NCBI GenBank assembly: GCA_964199315.1
Contig: OZ116703.1
Location: 806,001 to 870,000, forward strand
Source of the DNA: Orbicella franksi
Lineage: Eukaryota
Reading direction: 5' to 3'
Length of the DNA stretch: 64,000 nt
Shown: positions 9,617 through 15,825 of the stretch, piece by piece
Layout: each line of letters opens with the position of its first letter
How positions within the stretch are numbered: position 1 is the stretch's first letter
The notes under the pieces: generated by a model
The model's database searches: none
Told to the model about the DNA's origin: nothing
Seen by the model: only the letters and a program-made list of their open reading frames with translations
Translations under genes and position numbers: made by a program

Positions 9617-9722
9617 GTGCGTCTGTTCAGTAATAGATCACAGATGACGTAAAAATGTGGTAAGAACATCAGTGACATACTTGCCTGACGGCTCGTGTGC
9701 CACTTTTTTGTTCTTACCACAT
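9617..9722. repeat. Short interspersed palindromic repeat
   Basis: AAATGTGGTAAGAACA ... TGTTCTTACCACATTT inverted pair. Confidence 0.55.
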
Positions 9723-10053
9723 TTATTTGTTAAGTTCTATTTGTTAAGTTCAAAACCTAGCGCGATTTCTCTAGTGAACGTGGATTATAGTTACAAATAA
9801 GCAATAAAGAATGCTGTCTAGATTTTAGACAGATTTATGTGTTATTCTATACTGTCTATAAAATCCTGCAAGCTTCTCACTTAAACATAATGTTTTACTT
9901 TAAGTTCTAAGATACAAAACGGAACAAAAAGCATCCATTATAGAACATGTTTGCGTGTAAACCATGGTCACAAAAACAGCAGTCAAGTTTCAAGTTTAAG
10001 TTCTTCTGGTTCATTGGTTTATAAATGTTCAACAATTCATTTCCTTGCTGTTA

Positions 10054-13000
10054 TCAAACATTAGCCAACAGGTCCTTGTAAATGATCTCCGCCATACGCT
10101 CATATCCTGCCGGTTTCATGTGCAGTCCCACTTCCCACATCATTTTTCGTTCGTCAATACTCAAAGAATACCTCGGAAATTTCACCGCCAGGTCGCAAAG
10201 GATAGTAAACTCATTCGATCTGGCATAATATCTTAACTTTTCATTGATGTATTTTCTTTCCAAATGCGTGTGAAGACAAGCTGGTCTTTTAGATTCTTCG
10301 CAGTCCATTTCAGGAATGGTGACTGCTACTGTTTTCGCGCCATGACGATGTGAAGTTATGTGGAGGTTGATGATGCGCTCGACCGCTGTGTCCCAGTCCT
10401 TTCTGTAAGGAGTTTTGCTGTTATGAGCGATGTCGTTTGTACCGGCCAGGATAATAACCCAGGAGTATTTAAATTTTGCTGTTGAAACAAAAGGTAAAGG
10501 TGTTAACTAAGTCCATGCACAGTGTAAGAAAGCTATTAGGTAAAACTCATTCATCATTCCTTATTATCACAAACAGGACTGACATTTACGAGCACAAGAA
10601 AAATGTGCAAAGCTTTAATTTTGCTTAAAATTTGTCTCTGCATTTTGTTGGAATTTTTAGAAATTTTTGGCTAATATTCTGAATTACGCGCACTAAATAA
10701 ATTGCTTACATGCGCAGGTATTTTTCCAATCCGCCTCAAGTCATCCTTTTACAGGTTTGGGTCCCGTATAAAAAGAACGGGGCGGCTCGTTGTACCTTTT
10801 AGGGGTTATGAAAGCGGTTTTGGCACCTCTCAGGTGTTCACCCTCAAAAGGTCCACAGTGGGAGATTTTGAGGTATCTTTTAGGGTATTGAGCCGAAAAA
10901 ATATAACAGGATATCATGATCTGACAACTAAATTTACGAGTAGAGGCTATTCAAAGTAATCGTCTTTATCGTGTTGTTCTAGAAATGGTACCTCTTAGGG
11001 GTGAAAAAAATTCAAGGCACGCCCACAAAACAAGATTTTGGTACTTTTGACGAGTTTTTTCGAAATTTCTCACGAGTGCTCCCGTCCTTTTTATATAGTA
11101 GTTCCCCAGGGATAAAACAACATCTAACACTATTTAAAATAACATATACCATCTCGCAGATGATTTTGAAGCCTAGTGGACATTTCGGCTGCTTCAGTGC
11201 CATCTTTCGCTATTGTTGTCAAGGTATAACACCTGTGAATGTCCTTGTTTAACAGATACTCCAGTGTCTGGGCGTAAGGGGTGTGGCTCTTGTCATCACC
11301 ATGGAAACCGTTTGTGAGGCTATCACCGAAGGCGAGAATGCGGAATACCTCCACTCCTGCAAGAGGTGTTCAAAAAGACAATTTACAAAACGGTCTGCGT
11401 AAAACGAAGACTGCGGACTGCGGACTGCGGACTGCAGACTGCAGGCTCCAGACTCTAGACCGGGGGTAAAATACAGACTGCAGACTACAGACTTTTTAGT
11501 GTATATCGCTATCGCGGTAATATTTCCATTATCGGGTGCTGACCGTAAACCGGATTATTCAGGCTAATCGTAGTGAGAGTCTGCACTCCGGTTAGCCTGA
11601 ATATCACTCAGGTTAGCCTGTTTACGGTTAGCTCTAAATGATGGAAATGGTAGCACGATTCAGTTAAAAAGTCTGCAGTCTGCAGTCTGCAGTCTGCATT
11701 TTACCCTTACACTCCCCGATTTACAAAAATTAATACACTGCGTGAATTTTCATCATGAACGATAAACTAAAGAAATCATAATCGAAAACATTACCTGTTC
11801 TAATTTCACAAATATACCCAGCCTTGGGCTCACTGCATGTTACCATGTGAACGCCATCTTTGGAAAGAGCTCCGCAGTTTTTGTCACCTAGCTCATCTTT
11901 CACGTGGACGTCACGTGTGTAAGGCACGTCATCGATCCATGTCCAGTTTTCGCTCTTCTTCTTCAGGCCGATATAAAAATACTTTTTTCTTCGTTTCGAC
12001 GACGAAATCTTGCGTTGTAGAAATCTTAACTCTTTATCTGTTTTAGGCATTGCTAGCAGACCGTTTTCATCGTTACACTTTAGGGGAAATTCCTCCCATT
12101 TTCCGTTTGATTTGGGTACAAATAAATAACAAAATTCCTCGAATGGCAACCATCCAGAAGGACATTTGTCCCTGTAGTCTATAAGAAAAAAATGCCGGAA
12201 ACGAATTAAATTAAATTGAAAGCTAAGGAAACACTTAACATAGTTAAAAAAAAAAAGAGTTTTCCTCGCAAGCCTTAAAATTTGGTAAATGGCTCTGAAA
12301 CTCTTGACCCGAATGGCCAAAGCCTTATCCACGTTGACGTTCTGTTTATTCCATGTGCTCTTTGGCAGAACTACCCTTCCAGTCATAACAAGGTGACACA
12401 AACAAAACATGAATTCACAATCAACTAGGGCCATCCTTTCTTTGTTGTCCTACAACGTCTATATCTGTTTTCGTTCAGAGACCTTGATACTAAAGCATAT
12501 TTTAGATCGTAGTCTCCTCGATTCTTATACATTGAAAGATAGAAATGTACCATCGAGGATTCGGGTCGCAAAACGTTTACAGTGTAGACATTGAAAACAA
12601 ATGTGTTACCTGCTTTTCCCATTCTCTCGCATTTCTTTACTGTCTCTTTGTCTTGAGCACCAAAGATACCTGATAAGAGTTAAGTACAGTTATTGAACAC
12701 AAGGGAACAAAACAAAACAGTACGAAAAAGTCAAAGACCCCTTTTAAACTTGGTAAATTGAGATCACCTGCATGGGTCTTGTTCTTTGTTGATGGGGAAA
12801 CCTTGTGTATCTTCTTAGCATGTTTCTGTTTACCATGGCTTTCGTGTAAAGGCAGATAATTATCTCCACTTCCAGACCCTTCCCCACTACCTGAAGACGA
12901 TGACTGGTACACGTCCTGAGAACGGAATTTCCAATGAGGAATAGTCGTTCTTTTGTAGCTACTTAACGTAGTTACCTTTCGAAAATCTCGCATTTTTGTT

Positions 13001-15314
13001 GGACTGAAATACGGCGAAGGACTTACCCTTTGAGATTCAAGACTGGCATTACCATTATAGTAACCCGCACCATAGTCTTCTTTGAATTTTTGTTCGTTGT
13101 ATATGTCGTGACTTTCTTCTTCAATGTGGGACATGGCTTTGTCCTTAAACGATAAAAGCGAGACTCCAGAAGTAGCTTTGTTTAATCTCATATCAGATTG
13201 GATGGCGAGTTTTAGAGCTGCGTTAAATTTTGCATCAGAACCAAGTCCACTCTCGTTAGAATCAGATTCATCCTCTGGATGCACGAAACCTTCCAGGCCT
13301 GAGTTAGTGGTGTCGCTACTACCTCCAAATTTCTCCGACACTGTATTATAAATTTCCCCTTCTTTTAAGGCGGTTGTTGCCCCATACTTCTTCCAGCGTG
13401 GAGTTGGCCTTACAGCTAATCCAGGTTTACTGTGTATAAGTTCTGGATTGGCCAAGAAAGCATTTTCAAAATAGCTCGATTTATCTGGGGCTCCTAGCAG
13501 AAACATGTCATTAGCGTTAAATCGCGGTTCGTTTTCCATCTTGGTATTGTATCCAATTCCTTCATTTCTTTCCTTAACAATGGAAGCTTCTTGTTTTACA
13601 TCTTTCAGAGGGTATTCTCCAGTCGACGCGCTTCCCTCGCTGTGCTGACCACCAGACTCAGATTTTAAACTATTCTTCAATGTTTTCAGGCTTATCGATT
13701 TAGCTTGATTTCGGAGAGCATCTAAATCATTTATATCGTCCGATATTCCCACCAACTGTGGTCGTATGAGCGAATTCAGGAATCTGTAGCGAGAGCGAAG
13801 TTTAAGCTTTGCCCTTTGGAGTTCATGTTCTCCTTGAGTTGGAAGATAATAACGCAAGGTTCTCTGTGTATCTCCGACACTTCGATCCGGGTATTTCAGT
13901 AGTTCGGTTAATCTCGAGTCATGAGACCTCGAGGAGTTCTCCAGAAGCGATGCAGCATTCACAATCTTTGTTCCCTCCACTGAAGCTGCACCGTACTTGT
14001 CCATATTTGAGGTCTCTTTTCCAAATTCGCGATTTCCAAAACCCCTACCTTCCGCACCGGGTTTCGGTCCTTCTAGTACAAGTGCTGGTAACGATGCTTC
14101 TTCGTTCTTGTTTGAACCGTTTCTGTCACCAGGTTTGTCCTTCATTATTTCAGGATGAACAAAATACTTATCAAGGATGTGCATCCGAGTTTTCCTGGCA
14201 CCAGTCTCTTTGATCCCTTCCTTTACATTCTTCTTAGTTTCAATTCTCCCGGTCGAATCTTTTAATCTCACGTTCGCGGATCGCACCTGCGCTGATCCAT
14301 TGCGTACAAAATGGATTCTTTGTTTCGCTCGGTATTCATCTTCAAATGAATTGTCTCTTATCAAGATGTTTTGTGTCCCTGAAGTAAATCTACGATCGCT
14401 GGAATCAGATGCAACAATCTGGTCCGTTGAAAGATTGCCATTTGTTGCCAATGCAGTTCCTAAACAAGCAAAACAAAAGCACTCTCTAAAAGACAATATG
14501 GACACCGTTGTGCCACATAAATAGGTTTGTGCAGTACAAGAATGTTGAATGTTTTCGGCCAGTTGTAGAGTGAACAGAATGCACTCTGTAATTTAACGGA
14601 ATGAAGTTTTAGGTTCTTTCACCTCTAAAACTGAGTACGCTCTCTATGACAGCCAAAATGTGAATAAACAGTTTAACATTAGGTTTTTTCTCAAGCAACA
14701 CAAACTATAAATTATATGATGAGATTGCCAGCTTTCACGTGTGGTGCTTCCAAGCTGAGTGGTTTCGGCATAACCTTTTGTTTATTGTGAATATTGTTCG
14801 AATATTGGGGTTTGTCTTGATGTGAAGAGAAGGGGTTTCTTTTTCAACTGTTTTCACACTGTAAAAAAGCGTGTAAAAATCTTTAAATGGTTGCTTGGTA
14901 TTTGTCCAATGAAAATGGCAATAAAAACAAAGTGTTAAAATCTCATTTTCAAATAAAAAGAGAACGTAGTTCAGTAAAAGCGCACTCAGTATTTGTGTGC
15001 GAGTAAGTCCGTATTACAAACTTCCATTAACTATTTCTGTCACTACACCGACTCTTGGGTAAATATCGCATGCACGTGCGCAAAGTTTTTCTTTGTATTC
15101 CACTAGCTTTATGTGGTAAATTCAATCAAATACTGATCTGATTACGTATGAGATATCAAGAACTTGGAAACAAACTAGAGTGTACTGTTTTAAAAACCTC
15201 AAACGTTCAACAATCTTAATTAGAAGAGGCTTGAAATTTCTACTAACCTGCCAAAGCACTCAGCAACAGGCAAGTCATAAGAGTACTCCTTAGCAACCAG
15301 ACGTCGTGGGCCAT
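10054..15314 (-). CDS. Gene B: secreted ~924-aa protein: signal peptide + long disordered Ser/Gly/acidic stalk + C-type lectin domain + SGNH/GDSL hydrolase
   Basis: Exons 15248-15314 (MAHDVWLLRSTLMTCLLLSALA), 12768-14459, 11795-12178 (CPSGW...FCYLF...YIGL...WTWID...C...C...YICE, CTLD pattern), 11150-11356 (ILAFGDSLT, block I) and 10054-10478 (ILAGTND block III, GLH block V). All junctions are phase 1 and in frame. Confidence 0.8.
10760..11108. mobile_element. MITE-like element in a gene B intron
   Basis: Degenerate terminal inverted repeats CCCGTATAAAAAGAACGGGGCGGCTCG versus CGAGTGCTCCCGTCCTTTTTATATAG. Confidence 0.45.
11393..11706. mobile_element. MITE-like element with (GACTGCA/G)n subterminal heptamer repeats
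   Basis: GGGTAAAATACAGACTGCAGAC versus GTCTGCAGTCTGCATTTTACCC, plus an upstream GACTGCG array. Confidence 0.6.
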
Positions 15315-15825
15315 GTTCCTGATAACAATGTTATTGACTTCAACACCAGTCAATAACTCCACGGTTGGAACGGTAAATTCAAACAGTGTTTCTTAGGTTG
15401 AATAGAAAAAATATAATACCATAGATGTGACTAACGTAAACCTTTGTTGATTACATTGTCTCTCCAGTGCAAGATATAAAAGGTCTTTTCTTTCTAGTCA
15501 ATGTGCTTGAAGAAAAGATCCGAAGCTGAATTGTCAGTATATATCTTAACAAAAGTGCAGAGTCCCAACAATTCTAAATATGTCATAAAACGTTCGACAG
15601 TGGATTTTTTCTTTCTGCTCCGATGCACAAGGATTACCCTTGCAAGTTTGCGACTTCTGGTAATGCTTTTTAGAGGTAAATATTTTGTTACGAAATTTAA
15701 ACCATGTGGTTATTGGAATAAGAAACCTGCCTCCTTGAGAGAATATGGCAGGTAAATTTTGACACAGTTGTCACATGCTCGATTATGCGTGTCGACACAA
15801 GAAAGATCTAAGAGCTCTTAGATCT

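Follow-up and report, generated by a model that had tools for sequence, protein, structure and literature searches.

A coral gene joining a C-type lectin-like domain to an SGNH hydrolase domain in one predicted secreted protein, conserved in sea anemones

We describe a gene of the coral Orbicella franksi that joins a C-type lectin-like domain (CTLD) and an SGNH (GDSL-type) hydrolase domain in one protein. The gene lies on contig OZ116703.1 of assembly GCA_964199315.1, within a stretch of 64,000 nucleotides (positions 806,001 to 870,000; hereafter the window, whose own numbering is used throughout). Its six exons, spread over 15314 to 10054 of the minus strand, are separated by GT..AG introns throughout. 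Every junction is in phase 1 and in frame, and the exons join into a 2,835-nt reading frame that encodes a protein of 944 amino acids. From its N-terminus the protein consists of a hydrophobic start resembling a signal peptide, a long cysteine-free region, a short segment encoded by a mini-exon, the CTLD and an SGNH domain that is split between two exons. The fusion is carried by a single transcript, and it recurs, under purifying selection, in other stony corals and in sea anemones. We read this protein, with moderate confidence, as most likely a secreted esterase that is tethered in mucus or matrix.

The gene and its transcript

The features of the gene are as follows.

15248..15314, minus strand: coding part of exon 1; ATG at 15314, hydrophobic, signal-peptide-like start (MAHDVWLLRSTLMTCLLLSALA/G), GT donor after 15248
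12768..14459, minus strand: exon 2; 1,692 nt, residues 23-586, the long Cys-free region
12610..12669, minus strand: exon 3, the mini-exon; 60 nt, residues 587-606, IFGAQDKETVKKCERMGKA, with the conserved Cys600
11795..12178, minus strand: exon 4; CTLD, residues 607-734, PF00059 match
11150..11356, minus strand: exon 5; N-terminal part of the SGNH domain, with block I FGDSLT including Ser747 (11321-11319) and the block II region AKDGTE including Gly787
10054..10478, minus strand: exon 6; C-terminal part of the SGNH domain, and stop, with block III GTND (Asn818) and block V WEVGLH (Glu919, Val920, His923)
9722..10053, minus strand: 3' untranslated region (UTR); AATAAA at 9727-9722, with the RNA contig ending near 9731
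15314 to at least 15500, minus strand: 5' UTR, as covered by the RNA contig

The ATG at 15314 is preceded, 27 codons upstream, by an in-frame stop, and no earlier in-frame ATG is present. The gene is single-copy in the Orbicella franksi genome.

Splicing is documented by two independent sources. A single 3,914-nt RNA contig from run X1 aligns to the window in six blocks (9800-10478, 11150-11355, 11794-12178, 12610-12667, 12766-14458 and 15247-15500), the edges of which coincide with the predicted exon junctions, and this one contig carries all six exons. Raw poly(A) reads from run X24, which belongs to a different study, cross each of the five junctions: four reads at 10478/11150, eight at 11355/11794, three at 12178/12610, two at 12667/12766 and two at 14458/15247. 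Neither the X1 contig nor the X24 raw reads gave a report of a junction skipping the mini-exon. The exons are also present in RNA runs from several studies, labelled as coral or as coral metagenome.

These data bear directly on a first-pass annotation of the window, made from the sequence alone, which had placed the CTLD exon at 11795-12178 and the GDSL exon at 11150-11356 and had them splice in frame to each other and to the long exon. Both pairs of coordinates are exact, and the X1 contig and X24 reads confirm that the three exons are joined in frame in one transcript. The predicted length of ~924 amino acids in five exons has to be corrected to 944 amino acids in six, the shortfall having arisen because exon 3, a conserved mini-exon of 60 nt, was overlooked. 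That one protein carries the long region, the CTLD and the SGNH domain is borne out by the transcript and by the domain matches described below, and its hydrophobic start suggests that it is secreted.

Two further observations concern the transcript's surroundings. The X1 contig runs ~570 nt past 15500, which may represent an unusually long 5' UTR, an upstream non-coding exon or read-through. Within introns 5 and 4 (window 10750-11130 and 11400-11710), the depth of RNA words is very high, reaching 643, every run shows numerous loose ends and odd joints, and the stretch at 11400-11710 is bordered by inverted GCAGACT/GCAGTCC short tandem motifs. Both stretches look like copies of abundant transcribed interspersed repeats, resembling miniature inverted-repeat transposable elements (MITEs) or short interspersed nuclear elements (SINEs), that lie outside the mature mRNA.

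Conservation of the fusion in corals and sea anemones

The order of long Cys-free region, mini-exon, CTLD and split SGNH domain is found, all on one strand, in four further scleractinian loci (L001-L004). It is found as well in one sea-anemone locus (Actinostola, L013) and in one further lineage (L014). Identity to the window differs greatly between exons, and the scleractinian loci fall into a closer and a more distant pair.

Exon 2: 72-79% in L001 and L004; 34-35% in L002 and L003
Exon 4 (CTLD): 92-94% in L001 and L004; 76% in L002 and L003
Exon 5 (SGNH): 94-97% in L001 and L004; 70-74% in L002 and L003
Exon 6 (SGNH): 93-94% in L001 and L004; 78% in L002 and L003

Against the two closer species, the ratio of non-synonymous to synonymous substitution rates (dN/dS) is 0.40-0.41 for exon 2; it falls to 0.09-0.11 in the CTLD and to 0.02-0.13 in the SGNH exons.

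In Actinostola, very long low-complexity reading frames are followed by the mini-exon, the CTLD exon and two SGNH exons that are interrupted at the same intron site as in the coral. In L014 an open frame of 1,999 amino acids precedes the CTLD exon, which in turn precedes the SGNH exons. In the anemone Exaiptasia, the protein XP_020904325.1 has a Lectin_C domain directly followed by Lipase_GDSL_2, in a RefSeq model the N-terminus of which is cut off. Taken together, the orthologous loci and the Exaiptasia protein indicate that the fusion is common to stony corals and sea anemones and is under purifying selection.

Might the CTLD and the SGNH domain be encoded by two separate genes, with the fusion arising as an artefact of prediction or assembly? 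The GenBank model for Actinostola takes in the SGNH part alone, the Exaiptasia model is truncated at its N-terminus, and Logan contigs are by themselves insufficient proof of a single mRNA. However, raw poly(A) reads span every junction, including the one between the CTLD and GDSL exons at which a junction-read check had been proposed; the six-exon contig comes from another study; all junctions are in phase 1 and in frame; and the exon order is repeated in six other loci. We consider separate genes to be highly improbable. The SGNH-only Actinostola model probably exists because a minus-strand gene is annotated across a repeat. The repeat in question, at L013 5295-6031 and just upstream of the mini-exon, is a simple tandem repeat that reads KEARKQGS or LLASLPPC in translation.

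The SGNH domain, its family and its origin

The second half of the SGNH domain is recognized by the Pfam profile PF13472 (Lipase_GDSL_2) from exon 6 alone, with an expect value of 6.5e-8 and 33.7 bits against a cut-off of 32.9. Exon 5 matches the start of the same profile, weakly when taken alone. Joined, the two parts align over their full length with members of the family, and the orthologues match the profile with expect values of 1e-12 to 4e-14. Ser747 of block I, Asn818 of block III and His923 of block V are invariant in a 50-sequence alignment of the family and in all orthologues, and a pair of cysteines (Cys863/Cys871) is specific to the clade of CTLD-SGNH proteins. The sialate O-acetylesterase profile PF03629 (SASA/SIAE) gave no match at E<=1 on exons 5 and 6, nor at E<=0.01 on the orthologues. 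A search with NCBIfam profiles found nothing, and a sequence search of the PDB with exon 6 returned only hits with E>0.3.

The fold predicted for the SGNH domain of the anemone orthologue has a confidence (predicted local distance difference test, pLDDT) of 95.2, and Foldseek aligns this model with SGNH esterases at expect values of ~1e-9 to 1e-10, with template modelling (TM) scores of 0.67-0.76 and sequence identities of 14-23%. Its structural neighbours include the acetylxylan esterases 7ddy and 7toh (PbeAcXE), the CE3 enzyme 2vpt, PatB (7tlv), the yeast protein IAH1 (3mil), LipC of B. subtilis and arylesterases.

An exhaustive HMMER search of 1.84 billion representatives returned 397 relatives of the SGNH domain at E<=0.001. 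Named animal relatives come from Nematostella, Hydra, Stylophora, Orbicella, Oculina, Actinia, the jellyfish Sanderia and the sponge Oscarella, and the relatives from outside the animals include Pigoraptor, the amoebozoan Vermamoeba and a fungus. No other protein combining a CTLD with an SGNH domain was found in the top 150 of the 397 representatives, in 83 homologues of 166-528 amino acids or in large ESM Atlas clusters; this search covered the present SGNH family, with other SGNH subfamilies and longer proteins outside it and no InterPro architecture census.

In a maximum-likelihood tree the CTLD-SGNH proteins form one clade (support 99/97). Its sister clade (99/97) holds the Hydra protein LOC100211311, which is 1,802 amino acids long and has a signal peptide and ~1,590 Cys-poor residues rich in S, K and N, with one or two Cys among them, ahead of its C-terminal SGNH domain. 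This placement suggests that the ancestral layout was a secreted long region followed by an SGNH domain, and that the CTLD was gained later, in the lineage of corals and anemones. Insertion of the CTLD as a symmetric phase-1 exon fits with exon shuffling. A phylogeny had been proposed in the first-pass annotation as a check for bacterial origin of the SGNH domain. The tree points elsewhere, nesting the domain within a cnidarian and wider eukaryotic family, and a recent bacterial origin was rejected because the nearest relatives are cnidarian and the family spans the wider eukaryotes. Sequences named "lysophospholipase L1-like" in JGI data fall outside the CTLD-SGNH clade, on long branches.

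The genome of O. franksi contains six SGNH paralogues, with 39-43% identity, two of which are short and intronless (211 and 223 amino acids). A tandem trio of single-exon SGNH paralogues of ~266-276 amino acids lies at G000:C2:37922439-37939762 (L007, L008, L011), and the one read over its whole length has a hydrophobic anchor at the N-terminus and, at the same loop as the CTLD-SGNH protein, a pair of cysteines. At G000:C5:20366938-20371065 (L012 4939-9066, plus strand) an intronless frame of 1,375 amino acids encodes a hydrophobic N-terminal segment, a very long basic, disordered region rich in K, R and H, and a C-terminal SGNH domain with a canonical DxxH. This C5 paralogue is orthologous to LOC5514820 of Nematostella and to AWC38_SpisGene8427 of Stylophora, all of them uncharacterised.

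The lectin-like domain and its possible ligand

The assignment of exon 4 (12178-11795) to the C-type lectin-like domains is secure: PF00059 (Lectin_C) matches with an expect value of 3.3e-13 and 50.7 bits against a cut-off of 22.6, and the signature of the fold is present, with YIGL, WTWIDD and the six cysteines (612, 623, 641, 708, 721 and 730) of the long form. The EPN/QPD and WND motifs of Ca2+ site 2 are absent, the corresponding positions reading VKDELGDKNC and GVHMVTC. These motifs are missing as well from the Exaiptasia, Actinostola and L014 orthologues, that is, from every orthologue that was read. Among sequence matches in the PDB, CTLDs of the natural killer (NK) receptor type (KLRB1, CLEC2D) align over their full length, and the alignments to Mincle, DC-SIGNR and their relatives are mostly confined to the first 86-102 residues of the CTLD (residues 3-102). 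The absence of the motifs and the pattern of these alignments make canonical Ca2+-dependent glycan binding unlikely. A canonical sugar-binding CTLD was rejected as a candidate, the motifs being absent and the sugar-binding CTLDs mostly aligning only in part. Judged from the sequence, the ligand may be a non-canonical glycan, a protein or something else.

This result also weakens the functional proposal of the first-pass annotation, which was of a glycan-targeted esterase. In its full form the proposal would have the CTLD bind a sugar of mucus, microbe or symbiont and the SGNH domain take O-acetyl groups off glycans, for example acetylated polysaccharides or peptidoglycan. It is the most likely of three alternatives to a tethered esterase, ahead of a catalytically dead binding module and of separate genes, and several points favour it: many of the top structural neighbours (7ddy, 7toh, 2vpt, 7tlv) are carbohydrate acetyl-esterases or acetyl-transferases, the protein looks secreted, and SGNH domains of bacteria are often fused to targeting modules. 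Against these points stand the missing EPN/QPD and WND motifs and the full-length alignment of NK-receptor-type rather than sugar-binding CTLDs. The SGNH domain adds to the doubt, with no match to PF03629 and with IAH1, LipC and arylesterases that are equally good structural matches. On balance we judge a glycan-targeted O-acetyl esterase unlikely.

The long region and the mini-exon

Exon 2 encodes a cysteine-free region of ~565 amino acids in which S, K, G and E are abundant; Ser makes up 11.7% of it, Thr 5.7% and Pro 3.9%. Pfam has no match on this exon. An AlphaFold2 model built with 28 homologues has a mean pLDDT of 38.8 and few helices, and no mucin-type tandem repeats rich in Pro, Thr and Ser were visible on reading, no repeat finder having been used. 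The long regions of the anemone and of L014 are richer in S, N, P and T than the coral exon. The 28 homologues, which share 34-99% identity, were exon-sized open reading frames on coral contigs only, with no named model of 900 amino acids among them.

Several short motifs of exon 2 are kept in scleractinians that are otherwise only 34-46% identical there. One is the acidic Ser-Gly cluster SSSSGSGEGSGSGD (residues 542-555, 12903-12862), which is conserved as SSGSGE.SGSGE in those scleractinians and, by its sequence, looks like a glycosaminoglycan attachment site. The word "stalk", as used in the first-pass annotation, is acceptable for the product of exon 2 if it means a long, mostly disordered region, though not a featureless one.

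The mini-exon that follows is defined by the motif KKCxxxGK[AS] with a GT donor, which is present in L001-L004 and in the anemone locus L013. Of the 11 cysteines of the mature protein, the CTLD contains six and the SGNH domain four. The remaining one, Cys600 (window 12629-12631), is encoded by the mini-exon and is conserved from corals to anemones. Because the total is odd, one cysteine should be free, and it could form an interchain disulfide, giving a dimer, or pair with Cys777.

Catalytic site and probable function

Our preferred reading, a secreted esterase tethered in mucus or matrix, has to be weighed against several of our own observations. One concerns block V, where His923 is present and the Asp of the DxxH motif, three residues before it (His-3), is replaced by Val920. 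At least 90% of the aligned family members have this Asp, as do 203 of 245 motif matches. Within the CTLD-SGNH clade and its sister the residue at His-3 varies: this coral has Val, the anemones have Thr or Ser, Glu occurs in L014 and the distant scleractinians, and the Hydra clade has Gly. Activity may have been altered or lost because of the replacement of the catalytic Asp by Val. Block II is likewise degenerate by sequence in the coral and anemone proteins: the scleractinian AKDGTE has Ala at the first Gly of the family and keeps the second (787), and the anemone GKDKE keeps the first Gly and has Lys at the second, both in an ambiguous alignment. The fold was modelled on the anemone orthologue, ~51% identical, as a stand-in for the coral domain, and its structural neighbours, while they confirm the SGNH fold in the model, are generic and give no pointer to a substrate; an attempt to assign a substrate from structure failed for this reason. 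The signal peptide was called by eye rather than by a predictor, and expression was seen in whole-holobiont RNA only.

The changes at the active site could be taken to mean that the domain is no longer an enzyme. An SGNH domain lacking its catalytic Asp might instead bind a ligand, as part of a structural matrix protein or of one that resembles a proteoglycan, and the variety of residues found at His-3, the degenerate block II, the conserved acidic Ser-Gly cluster with its likeness to a glycosaminoglycan attachment site, and a layout of long modified region and CTLD that recalls the lecticans would all suit such a protein. Yet Ser747, Asn818, His923 and a Glu four residues before the His (His-4; Glu919 in the coral) are kept in every member of the clade that was read, from Hydra to corals, the Glu being invariant across the CTLD-SGNH clade and the Hydra sister clade, and the dN/dS of the SGNH exons is 0.02-0.13. 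The retention of these four residues together with the low dN/dS argues, at the level of sequence, for a working active site, which might use a shifted acid or a Ser-His dyad. SGNH enzymes without the Asp and of the Ser-His dyad type exist, an esterase of Streptomyces scabies being one example. We regard the loss of catalysis as doubtful.

As a tethered esterase, the protein would act outside the cell, with the long region, possibly glycosylated, holding it in mucus or matrix. The CTLD, binding by some site that is not the canonical Ca2+/sugar site, would bring the enzyme to its ligand. Ser747 and His923 would carry out catalysis, with an oxyanion hole that includes Asn818, and Glu919 may replace the usual Asp.

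A more specific role can be sketched as speculation. The host might secrete this esterase into its mucus or matrix, where a Ser-His-Glu(His-4) arrangement that has not previously been described would strip acyl groups, probably acetyl, from polymers of microbial or algal surfaces such as O-acetylated peptidoglycan, the CTLD delivering the enzyme to a non-canonical ligand, in the service of surface immunity or the handling of symbionts in corals and anemones. We think it rather improbable that this scenario is right in all its parts.

Comparison with known proteins

Secreted proteins are the main means by which corals manage the microbes on their surface and their algal partners, and few of these proteins have a known biochemical activity. 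A conserved and strongly constrained protein that combines a recognition-type domain with an enzyme domain is a candidate for an extracellular enzyme whose action goes beyond mere binding. The gene is also a clean case of domain insertion, the CTLD having entered an older cnidarian family as a symmetric phase-1 exon, and it marks a subfamily of SGNH proteins in which the catalytic Asp has been replaced and a neighbouring Glu is conserved from Hydra to corals.

The first-pass annotation named no characterised animal protein with this order of domains, and we found no published description of a CTLD-SGNH fusion or of the Exaiptasia protein in open-access papers and bioRxiv; a mention of GDSL in a coral genomics paper was set aside, as it concerns the unrelated Lipase_GDSL_3. 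The architecture seems undescribed in a characterised protein, in line with the annotation, but it is not unique to this genome, being conserved in corals and anemones and represented in RefSeq and UniRef by uncharacterised entries. The fusion is already in public databases under automatic names, both of its domains are common, and the combination of a long region with an SGNH domain is widespread in cnidarians.

AOAH, PLB1 and SIAE are hydrolases of the secretory pathway of the GDSL/SGNH type, some of them with accessory modules. The lecticans (aggrecan, versican) have a long glycosaminoglycan-bearing region and a C-terminal CTLD, together with Ig/Link, EGF and CCP modules, and no enzyme domain. 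To our knowledge a CTLD and an SGNH domain are combined in none of these proteins, and Pfam found no match to the Ig/Link, EGF or CCP modules in the coral protein. The bacterial and fungal SGNH esterases (CE3, 7toh, 3mil, LipC) share with the coral clade the flavodoxin-like fold and blocks I, III and V. They differ from the coral protein in their low identity to it (14-23%), in having neither a CTLD nor a long region and in generally keeping the canonical Asp.

One counterpart with a database entry is the Exaiptasia diaphana protein (XP_020904325.1, UniRef100_A0A913XGD1, 302 amino acids), an orthologue with an SGNH domain ~51% identical to that of the coral and with the block V sequence WESGLHMKP. 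Databases name it "uncharacterized" or "C-type lectin domain-containing protein", with no functional annotation. Since this automatic model begins inside the CTLD, the signal peptide, the long region and the mini-exon are all missing from it.

Three further cnidarian proteins share most of the plan. Like the coral protein, Hydra LOC100211311 (XP_012555546.2, 1,802 amino acids), Nematostella LOC5514820 (XP_032240262.2, 1,816 amino acids) and the C5 paralogue begin with a disordered region poor in Cys, which spans hundreds to thousands of residues, and end in an SGNH domain of the same family, with 39-46% identity; unlike it, they have no CTLD, and all three are uncharacterised. The C5 paralogue and the Nematostella protein differ from the coral protein further in their canonical DxxH, and the C5 gene is intronless, its product having an N-terminal hydrophobic anchor. 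The Hydra protein stands closest to the coral clade, sharing with it both a signal peptide and a block V of the form E-x-G-L-H[ML]KP without the Asp.

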